Source: Epithemia pelagica (Eukaryota; Protista; Bacillariophyta). Taken from it: a DNA stretch of 64,000 nt. Of the stretch, positions 6,107 through 53,800 are shown one piece after another (positions within the stretch are counted from its first letter, which is position 1; each line of letters begins with the position of its first letter). The stretch lies in contig OX337240.1 of assembly GCA_946965045.2 (NCBI GenBank), forward strand, positions 2,790,001 through 2,854,000, given 5' to 3'. The notes below the pieces were generated by a model. That model was not told the origin of the DNA, did not search any database, and saw only the letters and a list, made by a program, of their open reading frames with translations. Both the position numbers and the translations under genes were made by a program.

Positions 6107-6123
6107 GCTGACGTCAGTCATTT
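6107..6123. promoter_or_regulatory. Candidate bZIP/CRE-type site GCTGACGTCAGTCATTT upstream of FTHFS
   Basis: Palindrome TGACGTCA at 6109-6116; the same 17-mer recurs at 9377-9393. Confidence 0.3.
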
Positions 6124-7689: not shown

Positions 7690-8099
7690 GAAATGGCACC
7701 AAGAACACCATTTCGACCACCATCCATGCCAATGGATCCAAGACGGTTGATGAGGAAACCATTGAAAACTCTGCAGCTTCTAGTAGAATGTAGGCAACCA
7801 GCTTGCCTCTTTGGGAAACAAACGCGTACCAGTTTGCTTGCCGACGCATGGGTAGAAAATCTGAATATTGTTGTTGTTGTTGTTGTTGTCGAATGCACTT
7901 GTGCTTGTTGTGAGTGTCGCTGCGTTCCATGCTTTGTACATACCTGATTTCTTCTTGACAACATGTTTGCCCAATGTTACCAGGAAGCAATGTATCATTG
8001 GTAACGCCACACATTAGAATCGACAAGTCCACAAGCCCTATACTGAAAACCGCTAGTCTCGTGGCAACGCCTCTGGTCCATTTTTGGTTGTGGTCCAAA

Positions 8100-8890
8100 A
8101 GGTTCCACCAGACGCCCATCCACCAAACCGTCATGGAACGTGCCATGACCACCGTGGCAAGAACGAACCACAACCATGGATTCCGTCCACGGCTACAGTG
8201 TGGGATCGGTCGTCAAGGCCCAACCATATATCTCGTCACTAGACCCCGTTGGGTTGAGTGGAAGGATTTGGTCATGTCGTCGTCGTCGTGGTCCTGATTG
8301 TCCTTGGTAGTATCACGGAGATTGTTGGCCAACCGGTGGGCCGGAATCGGTCGACGACTACCGTAGTGAACGTTGCGCAGTGTCGCAACAGGCCGACGAG
8401 CATCTGGATCTACCATGGGATGGCAGTTGTGGCGGGGAGCACCGTAGCCATTGGCGGTGCAGCCAATGACTGTGGTCCCGGTTGGCCTTGTTGTGGTACT
8501 ACCGTATATGTGTGGACGAATATATCTGCTCGTTCCGGTTCCACGAATTGGACAAAAGGTGCGTCATCTACTACCTACCATGACGGGCACGGTCACTTTG
8601 GGCGTGGTGGAGGGTTCCACAGGATTGTCGGGGGGGATCATGACCACATTGTCCTGTGAGAATGGTCTTCCTACCGCGGTCTGTAGAGTGACGAGCCGGT
8701 CGATCGACCGACCGACCTTGATGGGAGTAACAATAAGTTGGTCCAAGATTTCTTCCAAAAGTTCCACCAAGAAATAGATCTGGTCCAGGATGGATGTTCG
8801 ACTCAAAATACGGTGCTTGTTGTAACGTCGGTTGGACCGAGCCTTGTGGCGTCGAAACAAGGAGACTTGGCATTGGTTGCAGTGAGGGAT
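8100..8890 (-). pseudogene. Truncated, frameshifted copy of the 3' region of the TKL kinase gene at 17177-20563
   Basis: [20 protein letters not shown] and [16 protein letters not shown] match the kinase C-terminal tail; no kinase domain is present. Confidence 0.8.
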
Positions 8891-15666: not shown

Positions 15667-17176
15667 ACTGGAAAGAACTACAACAAGAACAACAATAAGA
15701 ATAATGCAAGAGAGGTACAGGTATGTAGAATGGAGATAGGAAGGGCTGCTCTCTGCTCGTGGTGTGGAAAGTGGCGTGCCCAAACAATGACATAGAGGAG
15801 AATATCATTGAATGTTGGAGCAAACAGTGACACGTCATACTCGTAATCGTGTGGTATTGGAGTGCTGTAAGTCATCCCAGGAAAATATCTCTGACGCGAA
15901 CGACGTGTTCTGAGTTCGGCGGCCAAGATTCGTGTTCGTGGTCTTCTTACAACCAGGCGCGAATTGAAGTAAGTCACTCCAAAACTGAAAGGATTAAAGC
16001 TGAAAATCGAATATCAATAGCTAAGGATTCCAAGACGTGGTGACTCCCAAAGTCCACGTCAGAGAAAAAGTTCGTATGATTTTGAGATTTGGTAGGTCAT
16101 GTTCAAAGTGATATAGTACTGTATAACTATCCTTAGAGATTTGTGTACTCAAAGACGCCACGACATTTCTCAAAATATTGTTGGGCCTACTAGTCTTCCA
16201 ATACAGCCATCATTCCGCCTTTCGGTCTTGTTTGCAGCATTCCACCGAATGCAATTTGGTTGGGGTCATCACAGAACTCCGTCTGGATTGCGTCCGGCTA
16301 TCCATGAGGAAGCTACCCAAAATATAGTTCGCTAGCTTAGAGGACGACTCCATAATAACCCTTCCCTAACGTTTGGTAAACGGTAGAGTAACGGTTTCGT
16401 GTGTTCCTTTTCGCCATGAATGACACGCGAACACACATGGCTGCTTTCTTGGTTGCAGTTCCAGTTTCCGCAAGGTTTCTCTCCAAGCCACAAAGAAGAG
16501 GTTCCAATCCTAGTTCAGAATTGCCATCCTTGACATACGAGAAGCCGACAAGAATATAGAGAACCAACGCAACGAAACGAACTCTGGAGTGGTGAATCTT
16601 GTTGGTGGCTTGTTTGTCACAAGGTTACGGGTGTGTTTTTGCGTCGATTGGAGGTGGTTCCAGTTCGGAACGGGTGTCGTCGTTCCTGGATTGGTTGGTT
16701 GGGTCGGCTTGTTCTTTGTGGCTCGAGTCATTGATTGGGGTGGCAGGTCTTCTTGTGGGGCGCTAGTAGTGTTGGTGGTTTTCTCTTTTCTACCTGGTTT
16801 CGGGTGTGTGTCCAGTTTCTCCAGCATCGACCACCCAAACAGTGCCAATTTTTGATTGTTTTTGTTGGGTGGCTGCGGCGGCTGCCTTCCTTGTTGTTGG
16901 CTCTCTCTCGATCTCTCGATCTCTCTGTTCCTACCAAGACACTGTAGTGGTTCCACCTACCAACGAGTGTTTGTTTGGTTCGCCATTGCGGCTTTTTTTT
17001 GGTTCTCCCTTCCAATTCACAGTTGAAAGCAATTTTGATTTCTTGCGCGCACACATACCAGTTTGGAAAGTTGTGCTCCAAGAAACATTCTTGGTGGTCG
17101 ACCAAACTAGTTTTTGTTCTATTCTTGTTCCTTTTTGTTCCCTTGAAAGTGATCCTTGGCCCCACGGAGGAGGAAG

Positions 17177-19250
17177 ATGAGTCAGTCTTTTGTTTCTCGC
17201 ACCACCACCACTCCTCCCCAACGCCTCGTGGCGGCCCATTCGGCCTCGTCCTCCTTGTGCATTGCCAGTCAGGGCTGTGTCCAACAATGTGCGGCGCGCA
17301 CTCAAATTTGTCCCTGGTCGGCCCTGGTGGCCGCTCGGGCCGTGTCGGTGGCATTGGAACGATTGGGACAGGATTCGACCCTCTTTTCTTCTTGTGCGAC
17401 GGCGCCCTTTTGTCAAGTATCCCCCGAATCGGTCCACGTGGGAGACTTGTTGGGCGAAGGAGGTTTTTCGCAGGTCCATGTGTGTACCGTGGAATTCCCA
17501 GAAACGAAAGATGAGGCGACATTCCCATCACAATCATCACGACAACCACAACACGACAACGGAGGAACAGCACCCTCGGCCGCACTCCTGGTATCTTCCT
17601 TAGGTTCACGGACACGGCGACGAAGAAGGAGACGCTCGTCTCGTGTCACTCTCCCAGAAAATGCCTCGACAAGGACACTTGCTCCTACTCAAAAAGAAGA
17701 AGAAGAAGATCAAGAAGAAAAAAGAAACCACACTATGGACAGGAACGCCTGCACGGATACGGATGCACCCCCATCAAATGTACCACCACCACAACCAAGA
17801 GGACGCAAGGAGTTGGCTCTCAAATTTCTCAAGCCATCCGCCTTGCGCGATGCCTCGCAATTCAAACATGGAGCGGCTGATTTGGCCGTGGAGGCCTACT
17901 TTTTACAACGGTTGCAGCATCCCCACATTATTGCCTTGCATGGCATCGCGGCCGGTTCCATGGAGGCCAATATTTGGAAGGGCGCCCTCCATCCCACTCA
18001 ACCCACGCAAGGCTTGTTTTTGCTCTTGGATCGATTGGTGGAAACCTTGGAACAAAAAATTCAAACCTGGCGACAGGAAGAAACCAAACGATTTGTTCTG
18101 AGTCATCCCGTCGGAAGCAGCCACACGACTGGTAATCCCTACGTGCCATCCTCCTCCCCTTCTTCAACCATGTCGTCGTCTTGGTGGAACCAAGGGACGA
18201 ATAGCAACCTGTCCAACACGACCACCAGCAGCAGTGGTGCTACTACTGCTACTACGACCAGCTTGTCCATTACCAATTCGTCCTCGTCGTCGTCCTCCTC
18301 CTCGTCCTCCTTTTTGGTTGAATACCGCCATGCCAAACGACGACAATTGTTGGAACGATTGCAAATTGCGGTGCAGATTGCCTTGGCCTTGGAATATTTG
18401 CATTCCAATCACGTCTTGTTTCGCGATTTGAAACCCGAAAATATTGGCTTGGATCCCCACGGTCAAGTGAAATTGTTTGATTTTGGCTTGGCCAAGGAAT
18501 ACAAAGTGTCCAAACTCACGCAAACACCCTATCAACTCACGGGACAGACTGGATCACGACGATATATGGTACGGCAAAACCGTGACACGTGTAGTGTCCA
18601 TGGAAACCAAAGGAACCATGCCATTTTCTGTCTACGAAAAAGTCATGCACACATCTCACCCGTCTGGATTTTCCCGTTTGTATCTATCGTCTCTCTCGTT
18701 ACGCGTTGTCCTTTTTGTGTATTGCTTGGCTTGTGTCCGTCTTTTTGGTCGTTTTCTTCCTCTCTGTCCTCGTGGGTTCAGGCTCCGGAGGTGGCACGAG
18801 GGTCTCGCACCTATGATTTGACGGTGGATGTGTATAGTTTTGGTATTTTGTTGTGGGAATTGTGTGCCGCGACCAAACCCTTTTATGGATACAGTACCAA
18901 CAAGCACATGCAACGAGTCGTCCTACAAGGAGAACGACCGGCCATGGATGTCTTGCACACACAGCATTGGCCCTTGCCATTGCAAACTCTCATGAAACAG
19001 TGTTGGTCGGCCACGCCCAGTCACCGACCATCCTGTTCGGAAATTGTGGCCGTTTTGGAACGGACTCGGGGAGGACACATTGATGACCATCAGGGTGGTG
19101 GACGGAGTACCAATTTCACCCAAGACCATTATCAATGGGCACGACAATCCTCACCGGAAGAAATTAATCTCTTGCTTGGCTTGCAACCACCTCGACATGC
19201 CTCGCTTCAACAACAGCAACGGCTGAAACGTCGACAACAACGACGACGGC

Positions 19251-19285
<35 letters not shown>

Positions 19286-20563
19286 CGTCCCTTGTTACTC
19301 CAATCCGAAGAGGAGGATCGTGCCAGTAGTAGTAGTACGACGTTGTCCTGGCGACAAGCTCCCGGAAAACAGAAATCCACCATGGAACAACCACCAGGAC
19401 AACTTGCACTACAACGAGGTCCATCGTGGCGCTGGTCTTCGCCCTTCGGGTTTCCGTTGTCGTCGTTATGGACCAATCGGAACAACATTGGTGTGCGCAC
19501 CTTTACATCCAGCCAAGGCCGGGGAGGAAATTGGGCTCGTCGTCAAATGCTTCGAGATGCACATCAACCCGTTGGTACAAGGAGTGAAATGGAAATGAGA
19601 TTGGAGGATGACGACGATGGTCATGATGATGTCACGTTTAAAAGTGGACAACGTCGCCGTTCACCTATCCAAACTAGCAGCAGCAGCAAGAGTCTTGCAT
19701 CGCGAACCTCCCTCAATGCAACCAATGCCAAGTATCTATACTCCTTGTTTCGACGCCACAAGGCTCGGTCCAACCGACGTAACAACAAGCACCGTATTTT
19801 GAGTCGCACATGGAATGTACCATCCTGGACCAGACCTATTTCCTGGTGGAAATTTTGGAAGAAATCGTCGACCAACTTGTTACTACCATCAAGGACGACA
19901 AGATTGGCCTCGGCCGATCGACCTGCTACTGACCGTACTAACACGCAAGGAAGACCGTTCTCACAGGACAACGGGGTCATGGTCCCCCCAAACAATCCTG
20001 TCGAAACCTCCACCGCGCCCGAAGTGACAATGCCTGTCATGGTAGTAAATGAGTCACCGCATGTCCAATTCGTTGAACCAGAACTAGCGGATAGACATGT
20101 TCGCCAACGCATACTACCACAACAACGCCAACAGGGACCACATTTATCTTCTGCGCCGCCAATGGCTACGGTGCTCCCCGCCACAACTGCCATCCCCGTA
20201 TCGATGGTATATCCAGATGCTCGTCGGCCTGCTGCGACGCCGCAACGTTCCACCATCCCGAGTAGTCGACAGATTCCGGCCAACCGGTTGGTAAACAATC
20301 TCCGTGATACCAATGACAATCAGGACCACGACGACGACATGGCCAAATCCTTCCACTCAACCCAACGGGGTAGTGACGAGGTTTGGTCTGGTCTTGGCGA
20401 CCGATCCCACACAGTAGTCGTTGACCGCATGTGGACGGAATCTTCGGTTGTTGTTCTTGCTACGGTGGTGATGGCACTTTCCATGACGGTTTGGTGGATG
20501 GGCGTCTGGTGGAACCTTTTGACCACAACCAGAAATGGACAAGCGACGTTGCGGCAAGACTAA
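17177..20563 (+). CDS. TKL-type protein kinase with long low-complexity C-tail, join(17177..18568,18782..20563), ~1057 aa
   Basis: [39 protein letters not shown]|APE (intron 18569-18781), [16 protein letters not shown]; poly-Q and poly-S tracts. Confidence 0.9.
19250..19287 (+). repeat. (CAA)n microsatellite encoding poly-Q in the kinase
   Basis: Uninterrupted CAA run. Confidence 0.9.
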
Positions 20564-25253: not shown

Positions 25254-28200
25254 ATGGTGGTCAACGATACGGCTGGAGCTGCGAAAAAGGGTGGCGCGAT
25301 GATGACAAGTGCGATTGCGGCAGCCAAACAACAACAGCAAGAAGATCGAGCCTTGGCCAAAAAGAAGAAGCAACAAACCAAGACAACGAAAAAGAAGCAG
25401 CAACAACGCAAAAACAGTGATGATTCGTCGCAATCTTCCTCGTCGTCATCCTCTTCGTCGTCCTCGACCAATTCGTCGGGGGACGAGGAAGTGGACAAGG
25501 AATACGATACCAGTGTTCCGCCCAGTCTGGATCAACCGGTTCGGTTGGTAGAACAAGATCCTGGTGCCTTTCGAAGCATGTACAAGTTGTTGTCGGAAAT
25601 CGGACAAGGTGCCTTTGCCAAAGTCTACGAGGCGGCACATCGCAAAACGGGACACACGTATGCCGTCAAAAAAATTCATCGGCCCAAAATGATTTGGGGG
25701 GATCGGGATGCCTTGCAAGACGAAATTCATTCCCTTATGCATGTACGGGAAGGTCCCAATATTGTGCAATTGTATGAAGTGTACGAAGAAGATGTCGACT
25801 GTTTCTTGATTATGGAATTGATGCATGGTGGAGAATTGTTTGAACGCATCTTGCAGCAGCGCGAATCCTTTTCGGAAACACAGGCTCGTGATTGTTGTCA
25901 TGGCATGTTGCAAGGGTTGCAATACATGCACGAAAAACGGGTGGCACATCGCGATTTAAAACCGGAAAATTTACTCTTGACCGAAGCACCGTCACCTCCC
26001 AGCGAATATGCCGATGAAGAAGAAGATGTCTTGGTGGTGAAATTGGCCGATTTTGGCTTTGCCAAAAAGTGTCCACAAGAAAATGGATTGCGTACTCTCT
26101 GTGGAACACCCGGATACTTGGCCCCGGAAATTCTCGAACGATGGCCAGCCTACGATGTCAAGTGTGACTTGTGGTCCGTCGGTGTCATTTTATTCTTGTT
26201 GCTCGGTGGTTATTTGCCCTTTGAAGACGAAGATGAAGATCGAGTCTTTGAACGTACCCGCAATGGCGAATACGATTTTCATCCCACCTATTGGAATGGC
26301 ATTTCCACCACGGGCAAAACCTTGGTCACTCGACTCTTGACGGTCAATCCCAACAAGCGTATCTCGGCTACGGAAGCACTGGATCACGATTGGATGATGC
26401 AAGATACTGAATTGTTGGGGACGCACAATAACAACAACAACAATAATAATAAGCAACATCCCAACAATAAATTCCGCAACAACAACAATAACAAACCAGC
26501 CGATGTGCAGAATCGTGTCAAGCAATTGAATGAAAACTTCGCCGGATATTTGGAACGTCAAAAGGAAAAGGACAATGAATCCTCCCGGTTGACCAATGGA
26601 GACAAGGCCGCTCGTCGTCCCAATCGCAAATTTGAAGAAGATTCCAAAAGTGGAAAGCCCTTTGATGCCTTTTACGAATTGGGTGATGTTTTGGGGGAAG
26701 GTGGCTATGCCTGTGTCTATCGAGCCACCCACAAACGATCCAAAGGTACCTATGCGGTCAAGGATGTCCATACGGGGGCCTTGGAAACCTCCAATCAAGC
26801 CGCCTTGCAAGATGAAATTGCTGCCATGAAATTGTTGCGTGGTGGACCGCACATTATCCGATTGTTTGATGTCTTTGAAGAACCGGATCATACCTTTATG
26901 ATTATGGAAGAAATGAGGGGAGGTGATTTGTTGACCCGTATTTCCGACAAGGAAGTCTATACGGAGCGTGAGGCTCGCAAAACCTGCCGCGTCATTTTTG
27001 AAGGCATGGATTACATTCACAAAAAGAAAAGTACGTCCACTTTGGTTGTGTTTGTGGGTCATTTCGTACGGCAACTTGTTGCATTCAGTTCAACTACACC
27101 TATGAATGTTAATGGCGATTTGGATCGTCAGTGAAGCGCCTTTTTCTCACACACTGTCTTTGTTTACCCTAAATTTGCAGTTGCGCATCGCGATATCAAG
27201 CCTGAGAATGTGCTCATGGTCGAACAAGATGATGACACGAGCATCAAGATTGCCGATTTCGGTTTCTCCAAGCTCGTCCCTCGTCCCAATTGTTTGCGTA
27301 CCCTCTGTGGAACGGCTCAGTATGTGGCTCCCGAAGTGTTGGATTTACAAAGTTCTGGCTACGATCAACGTTCCGATATGTGGAGTGTGGGTGTGGTGGT
27401 GTATATTTTGTTGGGTGGGTACGCTCCCTTTGAAGGACCAGTTCAAGAATTGGCTCGCGTCATTTGTCGAGCCGACTATTGCTTCCATGACAAGTATTGG
27501 TCTGATATTTCCGATGAAGCCAAGGATATGATTCGGAACTTGTTGCAAATTGACCCCGAAATACGATACTCGGCAGAGTCTGCCTTGCAATGTCCGTGGA
27601 TGTCTATCGAAGATACGGAACTCATGGTGACTGATTTGTCTGCGGCGAAACAAGGACTCCAAAAGCGTGCGGCTGCCACCGAAGGACAGGCCAAACAATC
27701 GGGAATCCGTGCCCTCAGCAAACTCGAATCGCTCGATGTTTCCTTTACGGCCGGATTGGGTACCTTTGAAGAGGTGATGACTCGTCGTAACAAGAGGACA
27801 GAGTTGGAGACCTTGGATGAACAATCGGAGGTGACGCAAGCAATTGAAACGTCCAAGAGTGGCAAGACATTTGAATCCTTGTATCGATGGGGTCGTGCCA
27901 TTGAAGATGGAGAGTTTGTCATCCACGAATGCCGACACAAACAATCCAAAGATATTGTGGCGGTGAAGCGATTGGAACTCAATGATCTGGATCCTTTGGA
28001 TGCTGTGGCCTTACAGTCCGAAATTGAGTGTTTACGTGCCGTATCGGAAAGTCCCTTTGTTATCAAGCTATTTGATGTCTTTGATGAACCCGACTACACA
28101 TATATGGTGATGGAACGTATGCGCGGGGGCGATCTGATCGATCGTATCATTGAAAAGAAGCATTACAGTGAACCAGAAGCTCGCTTGGTTTGTCGCAAAG

Positions 28201-29108
28201 TCTTGCTTGGAGTGGAACACTGTCATGCTCGTCGTATTGCGGTGCGAAACATCAAGGCGGAAAGTTTGTTGATTGCCGAAGAGGGCAGCAATGTGGATGT
28301 CAAACTCAGTGACTTTTCCTTTGCCAAAAAGGTATTGTTCCCCAATGCGTTGCGAACTCAATGTGGAACAGAGGGCTATGTAGCGCCCGAAGTCTTGGAT
28401 CATCGACCGGCCTACGACGTTCAGTGCGATATGTGGAGTTTGGGTGTGGTCTTGTATATTTTGTTGGGTGGCTATCGTCCCTTCCGTGGGGACGATGAAG
28501 ATGATGTCATTCGTGCCATTCGATACGGTGAATACAAGTTCCACAAACGATATTGGAAAAAGATTTCGGAAGAGGCCAAGACCTTGATTGCCCGCATGTT
28601 GACAGTCAACCCAATAGCTCGTATCACAGCTACGGGTGCCTTGTCGAGCGAGTGGTTCGAAATGGGGGACGACGAAGACGACAGTGAGAATGCACCGAAA
28701 ACTTCCACTGCCAGGGGTACAACATCGAATGGAACCAAGAACACTTACAACAGTAGCAATGACAAGCCGACAGAGAAACCAAAGGCGAAAAAGACGAGTG
28801 CGCCTACCACCCCCACCTACAAAAAGACGACGACGCACACTTCGACAGTCGTATCGAGTCCAGTTTCCTCGACACACAACAACACATATGCCAAGAGTCC
28901 CCATCAGAGTACCAATAACCACAATTACAAACCGACCAATACCAAGGCCAAGAGTGTGGCGGCAACCTTTGAAAACAACAATGCGGCTAATAAAAAGAAG
29001 AAGGTGAAACGAAGTACGGCTGCCATTATTGCGGCGCGACGAAAGTTTCGGGGAGCCGTCTATGCCATTATGGCATATCACAAATTGCGAGCCTATCAAA
29101 AACACTAA
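25254..29108 (+). CDS. CaMK-like protein with three tandem kinase domains, join(25254..27030,27181..29108), ~1234 aa
   Basis: KD1 IGQGAFAKV/HRDLKPEN/DFG/GTPGYLAPE; KD2 LGEGGYACV/HRDIKPEN/DFG/GTAQYVAPE (150-nt intron in KKK|IAHRD); KD3 degenerate (VRNIKAES, DFS); C-terminal ARRKFRGAVYAIMA. Confidence 0.92.
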
Positions 29109-30313: not shown

Positions 30314-30650
30314 TCTGCTCCTCTTGATGCTTCTTGTTCTATTTCCTCTGATGAATAATGACAATCGTAGTGTCTCCCTTGGTTGCAGTCTCGTTGTCGG
30401 AACGAGCTGTGGGAGATATGTTTCACATGAGAACCGTTGTGATGCGACGATTCTAAAAATGTGTGGAGGCAATGTCATGCGTTGAAGAGCATAGTTGCCC
30501 GCCCCACGCGCATATCGACGCGTGCCCTTCGTCCTTTCATTTTCTTTCTGCGCGCTCGCGAGGAAATTTCTTTTTCGATCGCGAAACTTCTTTGGTACAC
30601 CGATTTTGAATTTTGCGCTAAAGGCGATGATACACATAGCGCATTTTCTA

Positions 30651-30708
30651 CTCGCCATTAGAGGTCCGCAGAAACAAGGACAGCAGACAGACTAATCCTT
30701 AACCTTAA
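30651..30708 (+). repeat. Left terminal inverted repeat (58 bp)
   Basis: CTCGCCATTAGAGGTCCGCAGAAACAAGGACAGCAGACAGACTAATCCTTAACCTTAA. Confidence 0.95.
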
Positions 30709-30937
30709 TGTAGCCAAAACTGTGCACGGTTGCCAACCAGGCCGACTTGCCCAGACCAACTGCCACCCACATTGAAGAAAAATCCTGTCCTATCCCTCCT
30801 TTTCTCCACACCATAGCAATACACACCTCAACTTCTCATCAACAACAGCAGCAGCACAAGCTTCACCAGCATCTGTATCAGCAGCAACAGCTTCACCAAA
30901 GCAATCCTTTCATTCCAATAACCACAACTTCTAGAGA

Positions 30938-31649
30938 GTAAGTGCTATGCCCAATCTGACACTTGGGAGACCTGGTCCATTCCAAGACGGTTCTGAATCA
31001 TCCCTGGTCTTGCTTCTATCTCATTTTCATCAGAAGATACAGCCCTGGCAATTTGGGGCTTCTCCATCCTGCTCTTTTGGGAAGGCTGATACTGTTTGAA
31101 AGCTCTCATTGAAACCGTAAGTGCTACGCCCATTCTGACACTTGGGCCACCTGAACCATGCCAAGACAATTCTAAATCATTCCTGTTCGTCCTTTTCTCT
31201 CATTTCCATCAGAAGATACAGCCCTGGCAATTTGGGCCTTCTCCATCCTGCTCTTTTGGGAAGGCTGATACTGTTTGAAAGCTCTCATTGAAACCGTAAG
31301 TGCTACGCCCATTCTGACACTTGGGCCACCTGGACCATGCCAAGACAAATCAAAATCATCCCTGTTCGTCCTTTTCTCTCATTTCCATCAGAAGATACAG
31401 CCCTGGCAATTTGGGCCTTCTCCATCCTGCTCTTTTGGGAAGGCTAATACTGTTTGAAAGCTCTCATTGGAACCGTAAGTGCTACGCCCATTCTGACACT
31501 TGGGCCACCTGGACCATGCCAAGACGATTCTAAATCATCCCTGTTCGTCCTTTTCTCTCATTTCCATCAGAAGATACAGCCCTGGCAATTTGGGGCTTCT
31601 CCATCCTGCTCTTTTGGGAAGGCTAATACTGTTTGGAAGCTCTCATTGG
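30938..31649 (+). repeat. Tandem array of four 179-bp units, each a GTAAGT...CATCAG intron-like segment plus an 83-nt exon-like segment
   Basis: GTAAGT at 30938, 31117, 31296, 31475 (period 179); the first CATCAG ends at 31033. Confidence 0.92.
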
Positions 31650-31665
31650 TTGCTTGAGTATTGAA

Positions 31666-32934
31666 ATGTCCAAACCAGTCAAGAGAGGCCGTTTGACCCT
31701 GAGTCAGCAACCTGACAACAATGGATCTACCTCTTTGCCTTTGGGAGGTCCTCCTTTAGGGGAGGCCTCTATAAGAAGGGCAGGGCTGGCAACGATACCC
31801 ACCATGGGAAGAATACTTTCGCATCTACAAGATCGACAACACATTGATGTTTCTTCAGTTGTTCATACGTACAAGTCAAGAAATAATTCTTCACGCCGAA
31901 CACAGGTCTCAGAAGCTATCATTCAAGGATGTGCTACACCTTTCAGGAAATGCAACAGACAGAGAAACAAGAGAAAGAAAAACAAACAAGATACTCTTGA
32001 GAAAGTACCCGAGGCTCCATTGGCTTCACAAATGACACCAGACTACTTGATGAGGAACACAGTCACATTCAAAAGTGATAGTACAGACGACGAATACTTT
32101 GAAGGCAGTGGAACCAAAACCGTCCGACCGATATTTGTGTCTCTTTCTAAGTTCCATACTACCGATACTGATGGTGGAGCTCTATATCAACCCAGTGATT
32201 CAACACTGCCTGTGTTTCTCAAGGTACCAGGACAGAATCATTTATCGTTCCCAGTACAGAAGAAAGTAATTTCTGTCTTTGAATCATTGGAATCTGCATG
32301 TTCTTTCCAACAACGAGGGAAGTTTCGATATGTCGGAATGGAATCACATCAATCTTCGTATGTAACCATTGGCAAACATGCAAATCAAGGTCGACACGGA
32401 ATTGTTGATTCCAAAAAGAAACTCATGACAGGCAAAGATAAGCAGGCATTGATGAAATTGGTGCGACAAGTCGAGCATTTATTTTGCGAGTGGATGGACT
32501 GGTCTATAATACAGAGCTATTCCATTACCAAGGCTGTTCAAGGTATACCAACTTTCTCAGACGGGAGCAACGACAGCACATTTTTCTCGTCAATCGCTTT
32601 TGGAAGGAATGTATTTCTTGGTGCACACACCGACCAAGACTTTGGTTATTCTGCAGTGATGGCCATGGCCACTGAACCGGATTCAGTTGGAAACAATATT
32701 CTTTGCTATTTTGTCTTTCCACAATGTGGACATGCAGTTGCCCTTCGAAACATGGACATTCTGTTCTTCAACCCCCAAGTCTATCACTGTGTTTCGAAGA
32801 AGGTTACCAGTGAGGATGTTTTTTGCATATCGTTCTACCTCAAGACAGCAGTTGTTGGAAAAAACGACAATACCATCCCCCTCACTGGAATCGAAGAGTG
32901 TATTTTGAACCAATTACAAAAGAAGGATAACTAA
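31666..32934 (+). CDS. TET/JBP-like 2OG-Fe(II) dioxygenase-fold protein, 422 aa
   Basis: FSSIAFGRNVFLGAHTDQD (HxD), YFVFPQCGHAVALRNMDILFFNPQVYHCVS (distal His), then CISFYLK strand; basic N-terminal cluster RQRNKRKKNK resembles an NLS. Confidence 0.7.
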   Translation: MSKPVKRGRLTLSQQPDNNGSTSLPLGGPPLGEASIRRAGLATIPTMGRILSHLQDRQHIDVSSVVHTYKSRNNSSRRTQVSEAIIQGCATPFRKCNRQRNKRKKNKQDTLEKVPEAPLASQMTPDYLMRNTVTFKSDSTDDEYFEGSGTKTVRPIFVSLSKFHTTDTDGGALYQPSDSTLPVFLKVPGQNHLSFPVQKKVISVFESLESACSFQQRGKFRYVGMESHQSSYVTIGKHANQGRHGIVDSKKKLMTGKDKQALMKLVRQVEHLFCEWMDWSIIQSYSITKAVQGIPTFSDGSNDSTFFSSIAFGRNVFLGAHTDQDFGYSAVMAMATEPDSVGNNILCYFVFPQCGHAVALRNMDILFFNPQVYHCVSKKVTSEDVFCISFYLKTAVVGKNDNTIPLTGIEECILNQLQKKDN

Positions 32935-32979
32935 ATATAGGTAAAATAAAATTTATTAACTGATCAATTGTTACTTTAT

Positions 32980-35900
32980 TCAATCAAATTCCGTTAACCC
33001 CAATCTAGCACCGCGGAATCTACGGCAATGGCGGGAATGTTCTGAATTCGAAGAAACCCACTCTTGTCCATGATTATGATTACTTCGAGTAGCCATGTCC
33101 TTGCGGATTGATCTTGTTAATTCACGCAGACAAACAAGTGGTTTCATCAAATCCACTCCATTATTATTGTAATTTGCTGAACGGCACAGTTTCTTGATTT
33201 CGTTCAACTCCTCTGTCATTAGTTGAACAAATGAATTGGGCGCTAATTCTTCGCCATACACCTCATCACATTTTGTGTGGAGATCAGTTGCATCATCAGT
33301 ATCATCAACAAATATGTCCCCAATTCCTTCATCAACATTGTCAATTGTGTCGTTTTCAAGGCCACGATTAGACTCATCATGAGATACATTGTCGTCTTGG
33401 AGAGATTCACTATCACTTGGGCATGGATTATCCCTGACTCCTTGAAGTGAAGGCATTGAGCGCCCATATTGTGGATTTATCCCATCCGGAGCAGTAAACG
33501 ACTCCTGTGTCAAGTTGTCTTGGTCCAAAGATACATTTTCAGTGTAGTTAAAGAAACCAGAAAATGTTGTGACGGCTCTTGTTATTTGTTCTTGCGAATA
33601 ATTCAGGCATGCTTCAGTTTCCCAATCTGGCAAATCAAAACCGGTTGGGCAGTAGCACCATTCCTCTTTCTCACACCATGTTGGTCCCGTGTCAAATGGT
33701 AACTTTGGTCCAGTAATATCGTTTGTTAATAGTTCTTTCAAACAATCATTTAGAGCATTCTCAGTATCATTGTTCGCATTGCAAAAGCCAAAGAAAATGT
33801 ATTTCTTCCACCACACAATACTCACATCATGATGGGTGAAGCCTTGGTAGTCCCGGCACTCAAAACACAGTACTGCGGCTTGATGCGAACATGGGTAACC
33901 ACACCTTTGAAACGTACCGCAGGAAAACAATAAGCGCCCGGAAGAATCCAATGTTACCGTTCTTGTACGATGCCATACTGGATGAAGGCATTTCTTCTCT
34001 GTATCCAAACAGTTGGTATCTACCACTTTGACATGCCAGTTCCATGGTGATGATCTATCACGTCGAATTGCATATTTGTCACGGCGCGTCCATGCATTGT
34101 GGACTAAATCATGGCACAATTCAGTTACCATTCCGTTGAGTGGTAGGAGATTCTCCTTCATCCAAACAGATTTAGCTTCGACTCGCGTTGCTGCAAGACG
34201 TAATTGTGAATTGATTAGAATGTCTGATTGAAACTTCAACAACGCTGCATTGCCTTGGACTGTTCCACCCGGTAAAACTGGAGCTGAGTGCTCTTTGATA
34301 CCACAGTTCGTACCTTCGTGACTGCTGTTAGTGCACTCTTCATAATGCCGAAGATTTTGTCTGTAATAGTGCACAAGTTGTCGATCGTGAATAAAAACAT
34401 ACCCAATCAAAAAGTTTTGCACCTTCCAACGTAAGTTGTCTGGAAGGAACTTTCGAACCTGCCGTGAATGAATGTAGGCCAAGAGCAGGCACTTCAATAT
34501 CACCAACTCATTTTCATTTTCACAATATCTTGGGTACATGAACGTGTAACACCACTGTTTCACAGTGTAGCAAAACAGTTTGTATTGTCGAATGTACGTT
34601 GAGTCAATGGCATTCCCGAATGAGCAATGTCGTAACCATCCCTTATGAATAATATGCCACCCACAACGAACACGAAAGCAATTTGGCATGTAACGACGAA
34701 AGGCCTCTTCAAGTTCAACAATCTCATGTGAGTCACCATCGGTTATGACACTTTGAATTTGGGATGTCCATTGATCTCCAAGAAGTTTTGGCAGGGCAAA
34801 GGAAAATACCCATCGGAAAGTTCCCTGACGCTGATCACGTAGAAACATCCGCAGAATTATAATATATTTCCCAAAGGTGGATCGGATAGAAACTGTAAGA
34901 AGTGGTCGTGACTCCTTGTTTGTTTCCTCTGTAACATCAATCTTGAGGACATGAGGGAATAAGCGGAACATTCTCTTTTCCTTGTTGGTGATCCATGCAC
35001 AAGCGACGAAGAAATGCTGGTTTTCTTGTAGACCTAAATTTTCCATATCAGCAGTGTATTCTTGAAGAACTTCTTGACAAAAATTAGTAAGGTCTGATAT
35101 ATCTCTCACTCCACAATCGACCTGGTTTTCACTGAAGATTAAGCCAGCTTGTCGCTGGACCTGAGCGTTTACAACATTAGGAGGTTTTGCCCCCCATATG
35201 CAGTAACTTATGTCTGGTGTTGATCGCAACCATTCAACAATTGCTCCAGCACCTACTTCAATACCATTGTAGTGATATTTTGAATCTGATGCAAAGTTGT
35301 GAAATGCATACCGAAGTTGTTGTGGAGTCAGTGTGAGATCGTGATTTGCATGGAAGAAGTTTCGACCATTAGCTGGACGAGTCAGGGCTTTACCAAGTTC
35401 AGCTGTACGCCGTCTCTGTTCTGACGTCAAATGACGAAGTTTTATTGGAATATCCGCAGGCAACCGCTTCATATGATTACAGTGGGTGACAGATCCAGAA
35501 CTACGCTTGACATAAAAGCCATACATATCGACAAATATATCAAAGCGAAAGGAGCATGTGTCTTCATTTTGTAATGCACGTGTTGTCACGTTTTTTCTTG
35601 GTCCCTTTTTGCCATCAACCCCCCTACTGTTGCCTTTCTTGTCATTGTGAAGTGAAACCTTACGGTGTTCCATGTTGGGGTCTCCCACAGATACTCGCTT
35701 CCGTTTGTTGGTATAGCGGCGGTAGCGGTCACAAGTGAAGGTACGTTGCATGTACGGAGGTTCACTTCCTTTAGGGAAAGCCTTGCGAGTGGCCAACGCC
35801 TTTTTGTGTGATGTACCATTGGAGACAATAGAAAATCCTCCACACATCGCAGTTTTGGAGATATCAGCTTTTAGCTTCAGAAAGGACCCATCTTCATCGA

Positions 35901-36165
35901 ATATATTGCTTGGGTTTGTACATGGAGGGTATGCTGTTCGACAGAAATATGCGAAGTTCCCTTTGACGTGCTCCGCTTGAGGGCCCCATCCAATGAAAGC
36001 ACAAATGTCGAAGCAACTTGTTGTTTGGTTGCATATGCAATCATCACCAGTGTGCATTGCAAAGGTCATTGGAGAAGTCCATTCTGTTTCTAAGGAGTTG
36101 AAGTATCGATCCAACTGTTGATGAATTTGATCATGTAGCATTCCATCGTTGTTGTTGTCGTCCAT
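32980..36165 (-). CDS. Mutator-like (MULE) DDE transposase with SWIM-like zinc finger, 1061 aa, uninterrupted
   Basis: FPHVLKIDVTEETNKESRPL (D1), VITDGD (D2), RCGWH (CxxH), TNSSHEGTN (E), FSCGTFQRCGYPCSH (SWIM-like). Confidence 0.88.
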   Translation of the reverse strand: MDDNNNDGMLHDQIHQQLDRYFNSLETEWTSPMTFAMHTGDDCICNQTTSCFDICAFIGWGPQAEHVKGNFAYFCRTAYPPCTNPSNIFDEDGSFLKLKADISKTAMCGGFSIVSNGTSHKKALATRKAFPKGSEPPYMQRTFTCDRYRRYTNKRKRVSVGDPNMEHRKVSLHNDKKGNSRGVDGKKGPRKNVTTRALQNEDTCSFRFDIFVDMYGFYVKRSSGSVTHCNHMKRLPADIPIKLRHLTSEQRRRTAELGKALTRPANGRNFFHANHDLTLTPQQLRYAFHNFASDSKYHYNGIEVGAGAIVEWLRSTPDISYCIWGAKPPNVVNAQVQRQAGLIFSENQVDCGVRDISDLTNFCQEVLQEYTADMENLGLQENQHFFVACAWITNKEKRMFRLFPHVLKIDVTEETNKESRPLLTVSIRSTFGKYIIILRMFLRDQRQGTFRWVFSFALPKLLGDQWTSQIQSVITDGDSHEIVELEEAFRRYMPNCFRVRCGWHIIHKGWLRHCSFGNAIDSTYIRQYKLFCYTVKQWCYTFMYPRYCENENELVILKCLLLAYIHSRQVRKFLPDNLRWKVQNFLIGYVFIHDRQLVHYYRQNLRHYEECTNSSHEGTNCGIKEHSAPVLPGGTVQGNAALLKFQSDILINSQLRLAATRVEAKSVWMKENLLPLNGMVTELCHDLVHNAWTRRDKYAIRRDRSSPWNWHVKVVDTNCLDTEKKCLHPVWHRTRTVTLDSSGRLLFSCGTFQRCGYPCSHQAAVLCFECRDYQGFTHHDVSIVWWKKYIFFGFCNANNDTENALNDCLKELLTNDITGPKLPFDTGPTWCEKEEWCYCPTGFDLPDWETEACLNYSQEQITRAVTTFSGFFNYTENVSLDQDNLTQESFTAPDGINPQYGRSMPSLQGVRDNPCPSDSESLQDDNVSHDESNRGLENDTIDNVDEGIGDIFVDDTDDATDLHTKCDEVYGEELAPNSFVQLMTEELNEIKKLCRSANYNNNGVDLMKPLVCLRELTRSIRKDMATRSNHNHGQEWVSSNSEHSRHCRRFRGARLGLTEFD

Positions 36166-36270
36166 GGCTAGATACTCAATGAATTGAATGCAATAGCGAA
36201 ATATCTTCCAATGCCGATCTGAAGACTTTCAGATTTGAAAGAGAACGGTTATTTCTTTGACGATTACTTA

Positions 36271-36315
36271 GGCGTGTACACGGTGTGACAGGCGTGTACA
36301 AAGGTGTGACAGGCG
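36271..36315 (+). repeat. Subterminal ~20-bp tandem repeats inside the right end
   Basis: GGCGTGTACACGGTGTGACA GGCGTGTACAAAGGTGTGACA GGCG. Confidence 0.8.
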
Positions 36316-36329
36316 GTGGAGTTGGTACG

Positions 36330-36387
36330 TTAAGGTTAAGGATTAGTCTGTCTGCTGTCCTTGTTTCTGCGGACCTCTAATGGCGAG
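36330..36387 (-). repeat. Right terminal inverted repeat (58 bp)
   Basis: Exact reverse complement of 30651-30708. Confidence 0.95.
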
Positions 36388-36575
36388 TAATATAGGATAT
36401 AGGACGAGGAACACACATACAATACAACGGTCCATGTCTGGCGTCCCAGTCGCGTTCGAGTTGCCCCACTTTCACTTTCCCACTCGCGTTCACATTCCTT
36501 CAGGTGGACCTCCCATAAAATCTTAAGTCTTTCCATTCCTTCTTCCGCTCTCTTTTGGTGCAACCAACCGACACC

Positions 36576-37576
36576 ATGCCTCGCTGGTACGAACTTCATC
36601 CTGCTCTTGTTCGCTTGGAGCTTCCATGTCTTGAAACATCTCGCTCTCACACGCACAACGACATTGTGTTTTATTTTTCAACAGTGTTTACAAAAACCCT
36701 TTGCTCATGACAGCTCAAGCCTTGCCCATCTTGGCCTTTATATTTTCCTTTGACACCCAACATGTCTTTGCTGCTGCTAGCACCGATCCTCGTCTCGTCA
36801 CATCTTGCTCGCAAAAATACCAACAATGCCGCAGCACTTGTTCTAAAACTTGTGCGCAGACGGGCCCCGCTTGTTATGCTACCAATCCTCCTTTTCTGAC
36901 GACATGTCAAAAGAGATGCTCCGACGAATTGAATACCTGTGACGAACCGGATCCATCCAACCAAGATGCTGTCACCACTATTGGAGAAGCCACCTGTGCC
37001 GAAGTGGAAATTCTCAACTCGTGCGAAGAAATGTGGCCCACTCTGTTCAATCGCAACACCAAATACTATCCCATTGATCCCACCTCCTGTCCTGGCCCCG
37101 AAGTGGACCAAGCGTATCCTGTCTACCGTTCGGATCCGTTGCCAGATACAGATAGTGGAAATGGACAAGGACCCAGTTACGCCTTTATTTGGCGCACCAA
37201 ACAAGTGTTTACCAATGGCTTTGGCAATGTTCCTGACTGGTACATTACTGGTGACAAAGCTGCGAATTGTGGCAATGTGGCTGGATACATCTTCTATGCC
37301 CGTATCCGCGATACCCAAAAGGAGGAACCTTTCTTGTTTGAGGATCCCACGGCTCCTCAAGAGGTCCGCTGCCGTGTTGCGGGGCCAACGACGGAAACAA
37401 AAGACTTGCAGATTCGTTGCAACCGCTTGGTGGACGAACAAGGAGGACCTTCGGAATCTCCAGGAACTAACCCTCTTTCTGGAGATGACCCCGACCAATC
37501 CTCTGCAGGCATCATGGCTGTTACCGGAATGGCCGCTGGCGTTGTGGTGATTATGGCGCAATTGTTCTTGATGTAA
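36576..37576 (+). CDS. Chimeric protein: 4-TM family N-terminus fused to a Cys-rich ectodomain with C-terminal hydrophobic anchor, join(36576..36586,36685..37576), 300 aa
   Basis: MPRCVYKNPLLMTAQALPILAFIFSF matches the family, then diverges (DTQH...CSQKYQQCRSTCSKTC...); ends SSAGIMAVTGMAAGVVVIMAQLFLM. Confidence 0.8.
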
Positions 37577-39473: not shown

Positions 39474-40107
39474 ATTGGAACCAATCCTATCGAAGATGAG
39501 GAATTGTCCAGAAGGGCAAAGTGCATCGACTACTGAGTCCCTTATGCCAGAAGGCAATTTAGAATTGTTTGTTTGTATTCTGGATTTTGGTACGAGTAGG
39601 TTAGGTTCACCACGACATCAACATATGTTGTTCAATTGAATGAAGCAAGTTCTGGAAGAGCGACATCTTGTTTGAAGACGTGAATCAAGAATGCGTTGAC
39701 CCAAGAATGCCCCCGCGCGTCCCGATTATGGTACTTCCGTGCCTTAAATAAAAGCGCGGTGCGCTCGCGAGGAAATTCTGTCATCGGATGCAACCTGCAA
39801 CCTCTTGCGCACCATTTTGCAAGGCATTTGGCCAATAACATCATACACATTCGACATCTTGTATCTTGTCGAAAACATAGTATGGCATATGGCATCATGC
39901 AAAGCACATACGTTGGATATTTGAACACACAGGCCACGAGGAACACACATACAATACAACGGTCCATGTCTGGCGTCCCAGTCGCGTTCGAGTTGCCCCA
40001 CTTTCACTTTCCCACTCGCGTTCACATTCCTTCAAGTGGACCTCCCATAAAATCTCAAGTCTTTCCATTCCTTCTTCCGCTCTGTTTTGCTGCTACTAAC
40101 TGACACC

Positions 40108-40786
40108 ATGCCTTGCTGGTACGAACTTTCTCTTCCTCTTGTTCCTTTGGCGCGTGATACTGCCCTGACCTTTCTAACACGCACAACTCCCCTGTTCTCC
40201 CTTATTCAACAGTGTTTACAAAGATCCACTCCTCATGACAGCGCAAGCCTTGTCTGTCTTGGCTTTTGTCTTTTCCTTTGGTGGTGTTGCCGCCATTGCT
40301 TTCGGATTGGCCGCCATGATTGTTTTGCAAGTGGTCTGGTGTTGTCGCATGAACAAATGTGGGTTAAATGCCGCCGCATCCTTTGCGGCAGTCGTGGCCA
40401 TTTTGAATTTGGCCTTGGCCGGTGCCTTGGCGGCACAAGGCGATGATTCATGTGATGGTGACGATGAATGTAATTGGGAAGTGTGGGCCGTCCTCTTGTT
40501 CTTGTCGGCTGGATTGTGGGTGGCTGTATCGACCCTTGTCTTTATTTTTGCCAATACCAAACGCTATGAAACCTGCCGAGAGGCCAGTGAACCAGCCGAT
40601 GGCGCCAATAACAGCGCCAAAGTGCCCGTCGCCACGGCCACTCCGGCATCAAAGACGGAGAGTACCAAAAAAGAGACGACAGAAACCACTGTCTTGCCCG
40701 ATGGAACCCGCAAAAGTGTCACCACCACGATTCATCCCGATGGATCCAAAACCATCACCGAAACCATGGAAAGTGAATCGGCCTAG
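40108..40786 (+). CDS. 4-TM (MPCC) family protein, array copy 1, join(40108..40118,40213..40786), 194 aa
   Basis: 11-nt exon, GTACGA...CAACAG intron, four TM segments, tail VLPDGTRKSVTTTIHPDGSKTITET. Confidence 0.88.
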
Positions 40787-50837: not shown

Positions 50838-53800
50838 CTCCCCACAACTCGTCGTTTCAGCCTTGTCATCATTGGATTTGTTGAATGGCTTGAGCATGGG
50901 CCAAATAGATACGAAATCCCAATGTTTGCTAAGGATATCGGCAGGGTTGGTCTTTCCATCTTTCCAGTAGAATGCAACATACTTTGCTGCGATGGCTTCA
51001 CGAACTCGGTGGTATGACAGGAGATGGTGTCTCTTGGATAGTATGGAATGAGGAACGGTTGCATTGAGCACAACAGATCTGTTATCTCCGTACATGTAAC
51101 TTCGCTCTCGGATAGGTACTCCAAGGTAGCGGAGAGAATGTCGTAATTCTGTAATCTGATCTATTGCTGTCCTTGCAGCCACAAACTCGGATCCATAGGT
51201 AGCAGTTTCCACCGTGCTCTGTCTCTTGCTGTACCAGTCAATAGGTGTTCCGTTCAACAAATGTAGAACAGCAGTGACGGATTTACCAGTGACTATGTCA
51301 TGCATGAGATTGGCATCAACATAATGAGTTGTGGTAACATAGCAGCCAAGAGGTGTTGGGCAGTCTTCAGGAATACGTTCACTTGCATTCGAATAGACAG
51401 TGCGAGTCCAATCAAATTCTTGGGTAGGAAGACTTGAATAATCAGGCTCTCCAATCCTAAATCTGATTGCGCCTTCTGGGAGATGTGCAAGGTATCCATA
51501 GATACGCTTGGCTCTATCAAGATGTCCTTTCCTCGGAGCAGCACGAAAGCGTGATAGCGTCATTGTAGCGGTGAAGACGTCGAAACGACCAATAGTGATC
51601 ACCCATTGGAGTTGTCCAATCAGAGTTTGGAAATGGCTAGTACCTTCTTCATCAAGGAGCTCAAATCATCCAATTCAGGATGGTCTCCACCAATAAGAGG
51701 TGTTTTGGCTTTCTTGGGTTTCTCCTTGAAGATTCGTTCGAAAGTGTCCATCATCTTACCAATGTAGCGTCTTGGATCTGCTACTAATGTTCCATCAGAA
51801 TCCTTGGTGTAACAACATCCCAAGTGGAAATCAATAGGTCCATCTCCTTTGAGTTTGAAGTTGTATTTCTCCTTCAGGATCTTGCAGATATTCCCAGGAT
51901 CAGTAGAAATAATGGCTAAGTCATCAACGTATACGGCAATGTATTCGTAACAGTCTTCTCCAGGTGCTTTCCTTATCCAGATATCCGGATCTGCTTTGCT
52001 TGGTGAAAATCCCATGTCTGTCAAAACATCGAATAAGACATCATGCCAGCGTGCGCCTGATGACTTCAATCCATAAAGTGCCTTGTATATAATCAGGATG
52101 TGACCTTCTAATTCCTTGAATTCAGGTCCTGGGACAATGAAAATTTTCTCCCCTGTCAAGGCTTCCAGGTATGCATTTCCAATATCTGCTCCCCATATTT
52201 CCAAGTCATTCAAAGTACCCAGGAATAAGGCAATGCGGAGGTTGCGAATGGAAACAACACCTGAATAGATTGTCTCAACAGGTTCTTTTGTGAGATGTCC
52301 ATCTGTAACAAGTCTTGCTCTATGTCGTCCATCATGTTTTACGTCAAAGACAAGATGTACACGTATCTTATGATATCCTTCAGGTGCATTGGATACTTTC
52401 CCTTTTATGAAGATGGCTTTCCCAAAATCCTTGAATGTCTTGTAGGACTGGATCTGTGACAATTCTAATTCTGTTGCATCCTGCCACTTTGTGTTGCCAT
52501 GTTGTTTATCAAGAGCGACAGCTTCCTCATAATTGCGTGGTACTTGCAATCCAAACTTATACTTGACGGAATGGTGAACTTGTTTAATCCTTGACTGTTT
52601 GGCTGCTCGAATGAGACGTTTGCTTGTTTTGACATAACGTTTCAAATGCTTCCATCCAGGTTCGTTGAGTAAACCATGTTTCTTTCCATAAATTGCTACA
52701 GTGATCGGATCATCATTGGCGATGAGTGATAAAGGTTCATAGGTAGTCTCCCCAGTTTCCCAATCAACAAGCAAATTATATTTGCTCCCCTTGTAATCTG
52801 GATCAGTTGTGTTCAGTGGGCCTTGATGGGCAATGACGTCCCTGAACCTGAAAGGATTATCTCCAGAGGTTTGAGCTTGGTTATCTCGTTCGATATACTC
52901 CATGAGTTGATTATAGGATATCATCTCATCAACATCAGAATTTGTCTTTCGGTAGATGTACTTGACACGTTCTTCCTGTTTCGTTGCTTCTTCATTAAGA
53001 TCAATGACTTGTTTGATGACACGTGCACGGTGTCGCTCCCCATTTTCTTCTGTGTCGCATAGGAATGTGCGTCCTATCATGTCGTCAAAATCGATCGTGG
53101 GCATTGGTTTGGATGGATCTTCACTATCACTGCGAATGAAGACAGTGTCAGCTTGCTTATCATTGTCATCCTTCTCAGACGAATCCTCCCCTGAAGGTCG
53201 ATCCACACGTAGGTTAGGTGTAGTGGATTCAACACGGCGAACGGCAGAACGGTAGATTATCTGGTTATCCTGGGTGAGAATCTTCCAAGTAAAAGAATCA
53301 CCAACGTTGTGAGCAAAACCAACCCAGTGGCCAAGTTTCTCATCAGAAGAAGATGGATATGAACCGGAATTGGGTTCAGCGGGGTCGACACGGTAGTAAA
53401 CCTCATCCCAGAAAGGAAAGAACAAGAGATGAGTAATGTCGGGTGGGCGTCCGGAGAGAGCCTCAAGAGGAGTGCGACCGGAATGGGTGGGTGATGATGT
53501 ATGGTTCAATAAGTCACAGACATACTCAAGGCAAAGAAGCCAGGTGTTGGCAGGGCAACCAGTGGCATTCATGAGAGCGTTGGTCATACGTTTGACGGTC
53601 TGGTAACGGTTTTCAGCCTTATTCTGGTGTTGATGATAAGGTTCGGATCGATACTCCCCAATAAGCAAAGTGCAAAGAATGTCTTTGACCTTTTGAGAGA
53701 TGAGAGATGAACCACCATCACTGATAAGAGTCTCCATGGCACCACGAAACCGGATGTTGTCCTGAAGAGTATTGACAAACTGTTTGGTTGACTTGATCCC

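Follow-up and report, generated by a model that had tools for sequence, protein, structure and literature searches.

Introduction

The closest systems described so far come from fungi, in which TET/JBP genes reside inside 11 lineages of DNA transposons and in which the role proposed for them is an escape from methylation silencing (Kojima 2025, PMC12730594). The fungal carriers are KDZ, Plavaka, hAT, Harbinger, IS3EU, EnSpm, ESTA as well as Helitron elements (PMC12730594; Iyer et al. 2014 as cited there). The Mutator-like elements (MULEs) of the Arabidopsis VANDAL type encode the anti-silencing protein VANC, and MuDR and Harbinger elements of Phytophthora bear SET domains, according to PMC12730594 and PMC6446971. 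For diatoms, the group named 'MULE-Diatoms' (group 37 of Dupeyron et al. 2019) is listed with one open reading frame (ORF), inverted ends of 123-124 bp and 'No TSD', i.e. no target-site duplication (PMC6446971). Here we analyse a stretch of 64,000 nucleotides of the diatom Epithemia pelagica (contig OX337240.1, positions 2,790,001 to 2,854,000 of the forward strand; hereafter the window, to which all coordinates refer unless a locus is named) and describe in it an autonomous MULE whose transposase gene is accompanied by a second gene, the cargo, coding for a protein of predicted TET/JBP fold that is conserved in diverged transposons and that might counteract the silencing of the element by methylation.

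This locus resembles the fungal TET-bearing transposons in that a dioxygenase gene lies beside the transposase gene within complete, multi-copy elements of several lineages, and in that related dioxygenases are found in unrelated superfamilies, between which there are indications of transfer. It differs from them by its host, which is a stramenopile, by its carrier, a MULE/MuDR element that is not among the 11 lineages of Kojima, by an enzyme that is too divergent for the PF12851 and PF20515 models and seems to be devoid of the canonical arginine binding 2-oxoglutarate (2OG), and by a conserved intron-like/exon-like tandem leader located 5' of the gene. With 'MULE-Diatoms' it shares a stramenopile host, a SWIM transposase and the absence of a target-site duplication in seven copies, whereas its conserved second gene and its inverted ends of 34-64 bp set it apart. 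The likeness to VANDAL/VANC and to the Phytophthora elements, a gene directed at host epigenetic silencing, is a functional analogy only: the cargo has no homology to VANC, which is not an enzyme of the TET/JBP fold. In the literature searched, transposon-borne TET/JBP genes are reported from fungi only, and no report of them in diatoms or in MULEs was found. The host lineage, the carrier superfamily, the divergent enzyme clade with its altered co-substrate site and the conserved repeated leader are what is new here.

Results

A recently active MULE with two convergent genes

The element spans positions 30649-36389, about 5.74 kb, and holds two convergent intact genes inside its inverted ends (Table 1). 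The two terminal inverted repeats differ by a single mismatch, which occurs only after a perfect stretch of 58-59 nt, and a 43-nt terminal probe is found twice in the window, both times at the element ends, for a chance expectation of 0. The element proper begins at 30650 (ACTCGCC...), and the left repeat has two CpG within its first 20 nt. The translated cargo contains the motifs AHTDQDF, FVFPQCGHAVALRNMDILFFNPQVYHC and SFYLK, and the ORFs of the element encode the cargo and the transposase only, neither a glycosyltransferase nor another modifying partner being among them.

Table 1. Features of the element, in window coordinates
Feature	Coordinates	Strand	Remarks
Left terminal inverted repeat	30649..30712	+	64 nt, 98% complementary to 36326-36389
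Tandem array, four 179-bp units	30938..31648	+	Immediately 5' of the cargo start codon
Cargo gene, 422 aa	31666..32934	+	Predicted TET/JBP-fold Fe(II) dioxygenase-like protein; ORF 31633-32934, ATG at 31666
Spacer between the convergent stop codons, 45 bp	32935..32979		From ORF coordinates
MULE transposase gene, intact, 1061 aa	32980..36165	-	RNaseH-like/MULE DDE domain and SWIM zinc finger (Pfam)
Subterminal 21-bp repeat, 2.2 copies	36270..36315		Separates the transposase start from the right end
Right terminal inverted repeat	36326..36389	-	Partner of the left repeat; element proper ends at 36388

The transposase scores above the cut-offs of PF21056 (ZSWIM1-3_RNaseH-like; 38.3 bits for a cut-off of 27.2) and PF10551 (MULE; 29.8 for 27.6) and slightly below that of the Pfam SWIM model (18.8 for 19.6), and its relatives in the protein collection bear PF10551, PF04434 and PF21056. 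The 21-bp subterminal repeat may serve to bind the transposase or form part of a promoter.

At the level of 90% identity, the cargo falls into a cluster of seven proteins on seven contigs of a single assembly, ERZ21939226, which is taken to be the window's own genome. Three of the seven loci were fetched (L006, L007 and L008) and, together with the window, they give at least four copies that are 98-99% identical and lie at different sites. Over 5.4 kb, L006 matches the window element at 98.9% identity, and its 1061-aa transposase, 99% identical, is intact, whereas in L007 and L008 the transposase is broken and the cargo frame intact. The flanks of the four copies are unrelated, the similarity ceasing precisely with the A...T that terminates the inverted ends. 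Furthermore, several more distinct flanks adjoin the element ends in contig sets from three public runs. We conclude that the element belongs to the diatom MULE (Mutator/MuDR) group of DNA transposons, that it is autonomous and that it has been active recently.

These results bear out much of an earlier note made on this DNA from its letters. The perfect 58-bp inverted repeats that it had claimed are there, within ends of 64 nt at 98% overall; the 1061-aa and 422-aa genes, on the minus and plus strands, and the 45-bp gap between their stop codons follow from the ORFs; the HxD motif (AHTDQD), the FVFPQCGHAVALRNMDILFFNPQVYHC region and the terminal S.Y.K are present in the cargo translation; and the MULE identity agrees with the Pfam domains, the inverted ends and the near-identical copies at separate sites.

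MULEs usually generate target-site duplications of 8-11 bp. No direct repeat of 2-12 bp was found at the seven element copies inspected, and when a paralogue of the right flank (39936-40280, 84% identical) was compared as an empty site, insertions and deletions were seen close to the junction. The missing duplication is atypical for MULEs, yet it agrees with the 'No TSD' entry of 'MULE-Diatoms'.

Two side observations concern the copies. The cargo cluster also includes proteins of 167 and 294 aa, which may be broken copies. In addition, one contig of run X3 joins position 31088 to 35380 through seven filler letters; this joint, weak because its shorter side has only 23 letters, would represent a non-autonomous derivative with an internal deletion.

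Predicted fold and active site of the cargo protein

A word-indexed protein search with the cargo retrieved 25 proteins, among which a homologue of Seminavis, and a profile search of a library clustered at 50% identity retrieved 1,608 representatives at E <= 0.001, 481 of them at E <= 1e-30. The AlphaFold2 model built from the family alignment has a predicted local distance difference test score (pLDDT) of 80 and a predicted template modelling score (pTM) of 0.83. When this model was compared by Foldseek with the PDB, CcTet, CMD1, NgTET1 and TET2 came out on top; in the AlphaFold DB, the best matches were clusters named JBP1/TET and fungal Tet-like; in the Atlas, the nearest clusters were unnamed and of diatom origin (Bacillariophyta label), followed by those with Tet_JBP or PF20515. 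In the structural comparison, the TET enzymes acting on DNA bases score clearly above the RNA and repair enzymes, and an identity with AlkB or FTO-type enzymes was rejected on this account. By the fold of its model, the cargo is thus a very divergent member of the DNA-base-modifying TET/JBP branch. A basic stretch near residues 94-108 resembles, in its sequence only, a nuclear localization signal.

Conservation was scored over 72 diverse members of the family. Seven residues are invariant in all 72 (G236, H321, D323, D325, F351, H374 and K393), Y391 is conserved in 71 of them and R217 in 97%. The HxD...H triad, which in the reference TET/JBP pattern coordinates the iron (PMC7854593), corresponds to H321, D323 and H374 and so belongs entirely to the invariant set. 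In the reference enzymes, 2OG is bound by two arginines (R1261 and R1896 in TET2, R224 and R289 in NgTET1), the second of which lies on the last barrel strand; six positions after it comes an aromatic residue that stacks against the flipped base, and a further two positions on, another residue touches the base (PMC7854593). The Y391-x-K393 spacing is that of the stacking aromatic and the base-contacting residue of TET2, NgTET1 and CMD1 (PMC7854593). The cargo shares with human TET2 (4NM6), Chlamydomonas CMD1 (7CY4-8), Naegleria NgTET1 (4LT5) and Coprinopsis CcTet (7VPN) the triad and, on the last strand, an aromatic residue with a polar or basic residue two positions on; unlike them, it has neither a Cys-rich nor a CXXC domain, and its sequence identity to them is 9-13%.

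Two positions distinguish the MULE-borne clade from the rest of the family. Residue 241 (codon near 32386) is Gln in this clade and Arg in 86% of the family, and residue 363 (codon near 32752) is Met in this clade and Gly in 93% of the family.

Conserved linkage to MULEs, Helitrons and Plavaka elements

Three diverged MULE lineages of assembly ERZ21939226 carry the same pair of genes in the same tail-to-tail order, each within its own inverted ends: L001 (cargo 47% and transposase 24% identical to those of the window), L002 (39% and 49%) and L003 (43% and 66%, the transposase being partly deleted). The ranking of these lineages by cargo identity differs from their ranking by transposase identity, which hints at an exchange of the cargo among MULE lineages. 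In two loci from other metagenomes, L090 and L091, a MULE transposase 32-34% identical to that of the window is followed by a convergent, distant member of the family, recognised with the family profile by hmmsearch at E 7e-28. L090 adjoins a fragment of a silicon transporter, a protein that is a hallmark of diatoms. Together with the Seminavis homologue and the Bacillariophyta label of the Atlas clusters, this fragment points to a diatom origin, the Atlas having given no taxonomic information for a neighbouring kinase.

The family is also found next to other transposon genes. Eighty metagenome contigs were fetched with the cargo profile, and the transposon context was counted on the 30 that reach at least 7 kb. 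No MULE was found on the 80 contigs; 17 of the 30 carry a Helitron protein, six a Plavaka transposase and seven neither, three of the latter having accessory ORFs otherwise typical of Helitron or Plavaka elements. The Helitron Rep/helicase was recognised by Helitron_like_N (6.6e-34) and PIF1 of Pfam, and the Plavaka transposase by PF18759 (6e-16). Many of these contigs are near-copies of one another, so that the independent lineages are fewer than the contigs. Cluster look-ups returned no Plavaka-linked member in ERZ21939226, and the linkage to Plavaka and Helitron elements comes from metagenome contigs only. When 76 cargo proteins were placed in a maximum-likelihood tree, those borne by MULEs, four in number, grouped as a single clade at a Shimodaira-Hasegawa-like approximate likelihood ratio test (SH-aLRT) support of 100, and at least six changes of transposon type are required overall. 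The association with a transposase that the earlier note had proposed to examine is therefore kept across L001-L003, L090 and L091, and the MULE-TET pairing that it had put forward is confirmed but too narrow, the family lying beside Helitron and Plavaka transposases as well.

Both genes evolve under purifying selection. The ratio of nonsynonymous to synonymous polymorphism (pN/pS), which rests on small counts, ranges for the cargo from 0.23 to 0.44 in five of the six pairs formed by the window and L006-L008, and reaches 0.76 in the closest pair, window-L006, from 11 differences only; for the transposase it is 0.17-0.45 between copies. None of the four copies inspected has a disrupted cargo frame, not even the two whose transposase is broken.

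These data bear directly on the possibility that the cargo is a passenger or a host gene lodged in transposons, in the manner of a Pack-MULE, or that it acts on RNA or protein. MULEs do capture host genes (PMC6446971), and two members of the family stand alone, L004 of Seminavis robusta and L092 having no transposase within 10 kb. Nevertheless, a full-length intact cargo is found in six MULE lineages with an identical convergent layout, 23 of the 30 longer metagenome contigs offer a Helitron or Plavaka context, pN/pS remains under 0.5 in five of six copy pairs, and the structural scores favour the TET enzymes of DNA bases over RNA and repair enzymes. Because the linkage is conserved across diverged MULE lineages, a one-off Pack-MULE capture was rejected, the transposase being intact and the cargo full length, conserved across lineages and under purifying selection; for the same reason the passenger explanation is largely excluded, and we regard it as highly improbable.

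Other loci showed related arrangements. A Helitron-type contig (L005:1-10593) contains two tandem, diverged TET-like paralogues (3785-5443 and 5973-7385) and, after them, a UCH-type ubiquitin hydrolase; the two paralogues fall into different clades of the tree, one of them Plavaka-associated. In L089:329-8980, a MULE transposase 45% identical to that of the window is followed by a convergent 1081-aa ORF without a family match and, at 7850-8980, by a weak SET-domain gene, no TET-like gene being present after the transposase; L089 possibly represents a MULE whose cargo, though of another kind, is also related to chromatin.

A probable footprint of cytosine methylation on the copies

One hundred substitutions are found in a single copy each, and 29 of them are transitions (C to T or G to A) at CpG. 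Of the 326 CpG bases, 29 have undergone such a transition, the number being 21 for the 1705 C/G bases outside CpG (odds ratio 7.8, p 8e-12), and the CpG observed/expected ratio is 0.64 in the element for 0.90 in the window. Since the transitions are concentrated at CpG, 5-methylcytosine (5mC) is likely to be present on the copies; the CpG decay is probably a footprint of cytosine methylation, and the presumed substrate of the cargo would accordingly lie on the elements themselves. In diatoms, 5mC has been reported to be confined to transposons, in work cited in PMC12344493.

A repeated leader upstream of the cargo gene

The 179-bp array occupies most of the stretch that separates the left end from the cargo ORF. 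Each unit starts with GTAAGT, reaches a pyrimidine tract and CAG at about +96, and continues with an exon-like segment of about 83 nt. The number of units varies among near-identical copies, with two in L007 and in L008, four in the window and eight in L006. In all four MULE lineages, an array of period 178-179 with 4 to 6.8 units lies on the stretch that leads from the left end to the cargo gene; the units of different lineages show only 35-50% likeness, and the layout is nevertheless common to all, GTAAGT being followed 80-97 nt on by the pyrimidine tract and CAG, and then by 82-98 nt up to the next GTAAGT. The units of L001 and L002 also bear a branch-point-like TTCTAAC. Furthermore, at least 13 Helitron, Plavaka or unassigned metagenome loci have tandem arrays, with a period of 63-184 bp, directly 5' of the gene. 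The upstream array thus seems to travel together with the gene, and we infer from its splice-site-like layout that each unit would consist of an intron and a mini-exon, the whole forming a repeated, spliced 5' leader.

L001 harbours a second array (L001:8038-8511, period 180 bp, 2.6 copies), in frame within the N-terminal coding region of its cargo. Duplications of about 180 bp therefore recur in two registers, the leader and the L001 coding region.

Arguments against 5mC oxidation, and alternative chemistries

Several results weigh against a cargo that oxidises 5mC to relieve silencing, and we assemble them here, together with the two solitary family members mentioned above. With respect to family models, the cargo matches PF20515 (Tet-like 2OG oxygenase) with an E-value of 0.069 and 13.6 bits for a cut-off of 27, PF12851 (Tet_JBP) is matched by three of the 72 members with a best E-value of 0.014, and Pfam comparisons made with 25 and with 72 members yielded sub-threshold matches to Tet_JBP, PF20515 and Cupin_2 only. 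Sequence searches of the PDB with the single protein and with two family profiles gave nothing meaningful, a levansucrase at E 0.58 being dismissed as noise. In the active site, the family departs from TET2, CMD1, NgTET1 and CcTet at two points: residue 385, six positions before Y391 and expected to be Arg, is Val or Ile family-wide, and the conserved Asp lies two residues past the HxD Asp, whereas the base-N4-contacting Asp of other enzymes lies at three. The public runs that bear element sequence are three contig-only sets and look DNA-like, with neither splice joints in the leader nor information on strand; in the contigs of run X3 the word depth of the 179-bp array is very high, a depth that is not readable as expression. 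Finally, the CpG footprint would show that, in spite of the cargo, methylation affects or has affected the copies, and decay of this strength means that any protection conferred by the cargo is incomplete. The TET/JBP assignment of the earlier note is upheld as far as Foldseek and the HxD...H triad are concerned; it is weakened by PF12851 and PF20515 scores below the gathering thresholds and by the apparent loss of the canonical arginine.

This apparent loss deserves attention. The canonical 2OG-binding arginine appears to be missing family-wide, its position having been assigned from spacing and structural alignment ranges and not from a residue-level superposition, and 2OG-dependent oxidation of 5mC cannot therefore be assumed. 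After H374, the sole Arg-rich column is 379, and the conserved basic residues of this region are only R/K379 (88%) and the invariant K393. R217 lies 104 residues ahead of the HxD motif; the N-terminal arginine that contacts both the co-substrate and the flipped base lies 101 residues ahead of it in CMD1 (R244) and 121 in TET2 (R1261). The same element and the same fold could then operate with another co-substrate or produce a hypermodified base, so that the DNA would be marked and not demethylated, after the model of CMD1, which uses vitamin C and yields 5-glyceryl-methylcytosine. The apparent family-wide replacement of the C-terminal arginine by Val or Ile speaks for this explanation, the co-substrate switch of CMD1 being itself accounted for by the loss of the functional arginine at that site (PMC7854593). 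It is tempered by the manner in which the arginine position was assigned, by the fact that K393, R/K379, R361 or R217 could take over the binding of 2OG, and by the lack of an encoded glycosyltransferase or other modifying partner in the element. Lysine binds 2OG in other 2OG oxygenases. On balance, we hold a CMD1-like chemistry, which is the foremost alternative, to be unlikely.

A second explanation is suggested by the displaced Asp, which is one residue off the cytosine-N4 contact of TET2, NgTET1 and CMD1. The cargo might deposit a repressive or self-limiting mark, by converting thymine to 5-hydroxymethyluracil or by acting on N6-methyladenine, and so regulate the activity of the element, or target or donor DNA during transposition, instead of opposing silencing. 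TET/JBP enzymes do include thymine hydroxylases, namely JBP and a dinoflagellate homologue (PMC11572971), and CcTet, one of the top structural matches, is active on N6-methyladenine too. However, if the mark silenced the very element that carries the gene, the retention of the gene under purifying selection by three unrelated types of transposons would be hard to explain, and we consider a self-limiting role very unlikely.

Genomic neighbourhood of the element

The sequence that flanks the element on its right is part of a family repeated in the neighbourhood; members at 36404-36752 and 39936-40280 are 80-85% identical, shorter matches lie near 41854, 43545, 45256 and 46779, and the element is located at the edge of one member. 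Just upstream lie two adjacent protein-kinase genes on the plus strand (25254-27134 and 27210-29108; Pkinase 5e-99 and 4e-91), and a third kinase-domain ORF is found at 17156-20563. A 1622-aa ORF on the minus strand (51620-56488) codes for a Copia-type reverse transcriptase (RVT_2, 2.3e-24) and marks a retrotransposon 15 kb from the MULE.

Discussion

The reading that we favour is that of an autonomous diatom MULE whose conserved second gene, of TET/JBP fold, serves to counteract silencing by methylation; as a whole, we give it about an even chance. Its parts do not have the same strength. The structural and genomic part we hold with high confidence, and the functional part, namely an oxidation of 5mC that weakens methylation silencing, is tentative, with a chance that we place a little below even.

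In the mechanism that we propose, the cargo protein would enter the nucleus, flip out a modified pyrimidine of DNA, most likely 5mC at CpG, and oxidise it. This oxidation would weaken or reverse the methylation silencing of the element, for instance at its CpG-containing ends or at its promoters, and the expression of the transposase and transposition would thereby remain possible. The repeated intron-like/exon-like leader, which is probably spliced, would support the expression of the cargo.

A broader proposal may be formulated, which we judge decidedly unlikely in its entirety. It holds that diatoms and related plankton possess a large, hitherto undescribed clade of TET/JBP-fold proteins (about 1,600 representatives at 50% identity), borne mainly by three unrelated kinds of DNA transposons, MULE, Plavaka and Helitron elements, in which the arginine has been replaced and which may use another co-substrate or create a base modification unseen in stramenopiles, the gene travelling as a cassette together with a repeated, spliced leader that would in its turn aid the evasion of silencing.

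In conclusion, our observations point to the cargo as a concrete candidate for an enzyme from which oxidised or modified cytosines could arise in the genomes of diatoms, and the altered co-substrate site means that its chemistry may be new. The copies with an intact or a broken transposase, and with two, four or eight leader units, constitute a natural experiment on anti-silencing within a single genome. Beyond this element, a system parallel to that of fungi, in a distant lineage and in several unrelated types of transposons, suggests that a methyl-cytosine oxidase of its own serves a transposon as a general strategy that has succeeded repeatedly and that may apply wherever 5mC mainly targets transposons, as it does in diatoms.

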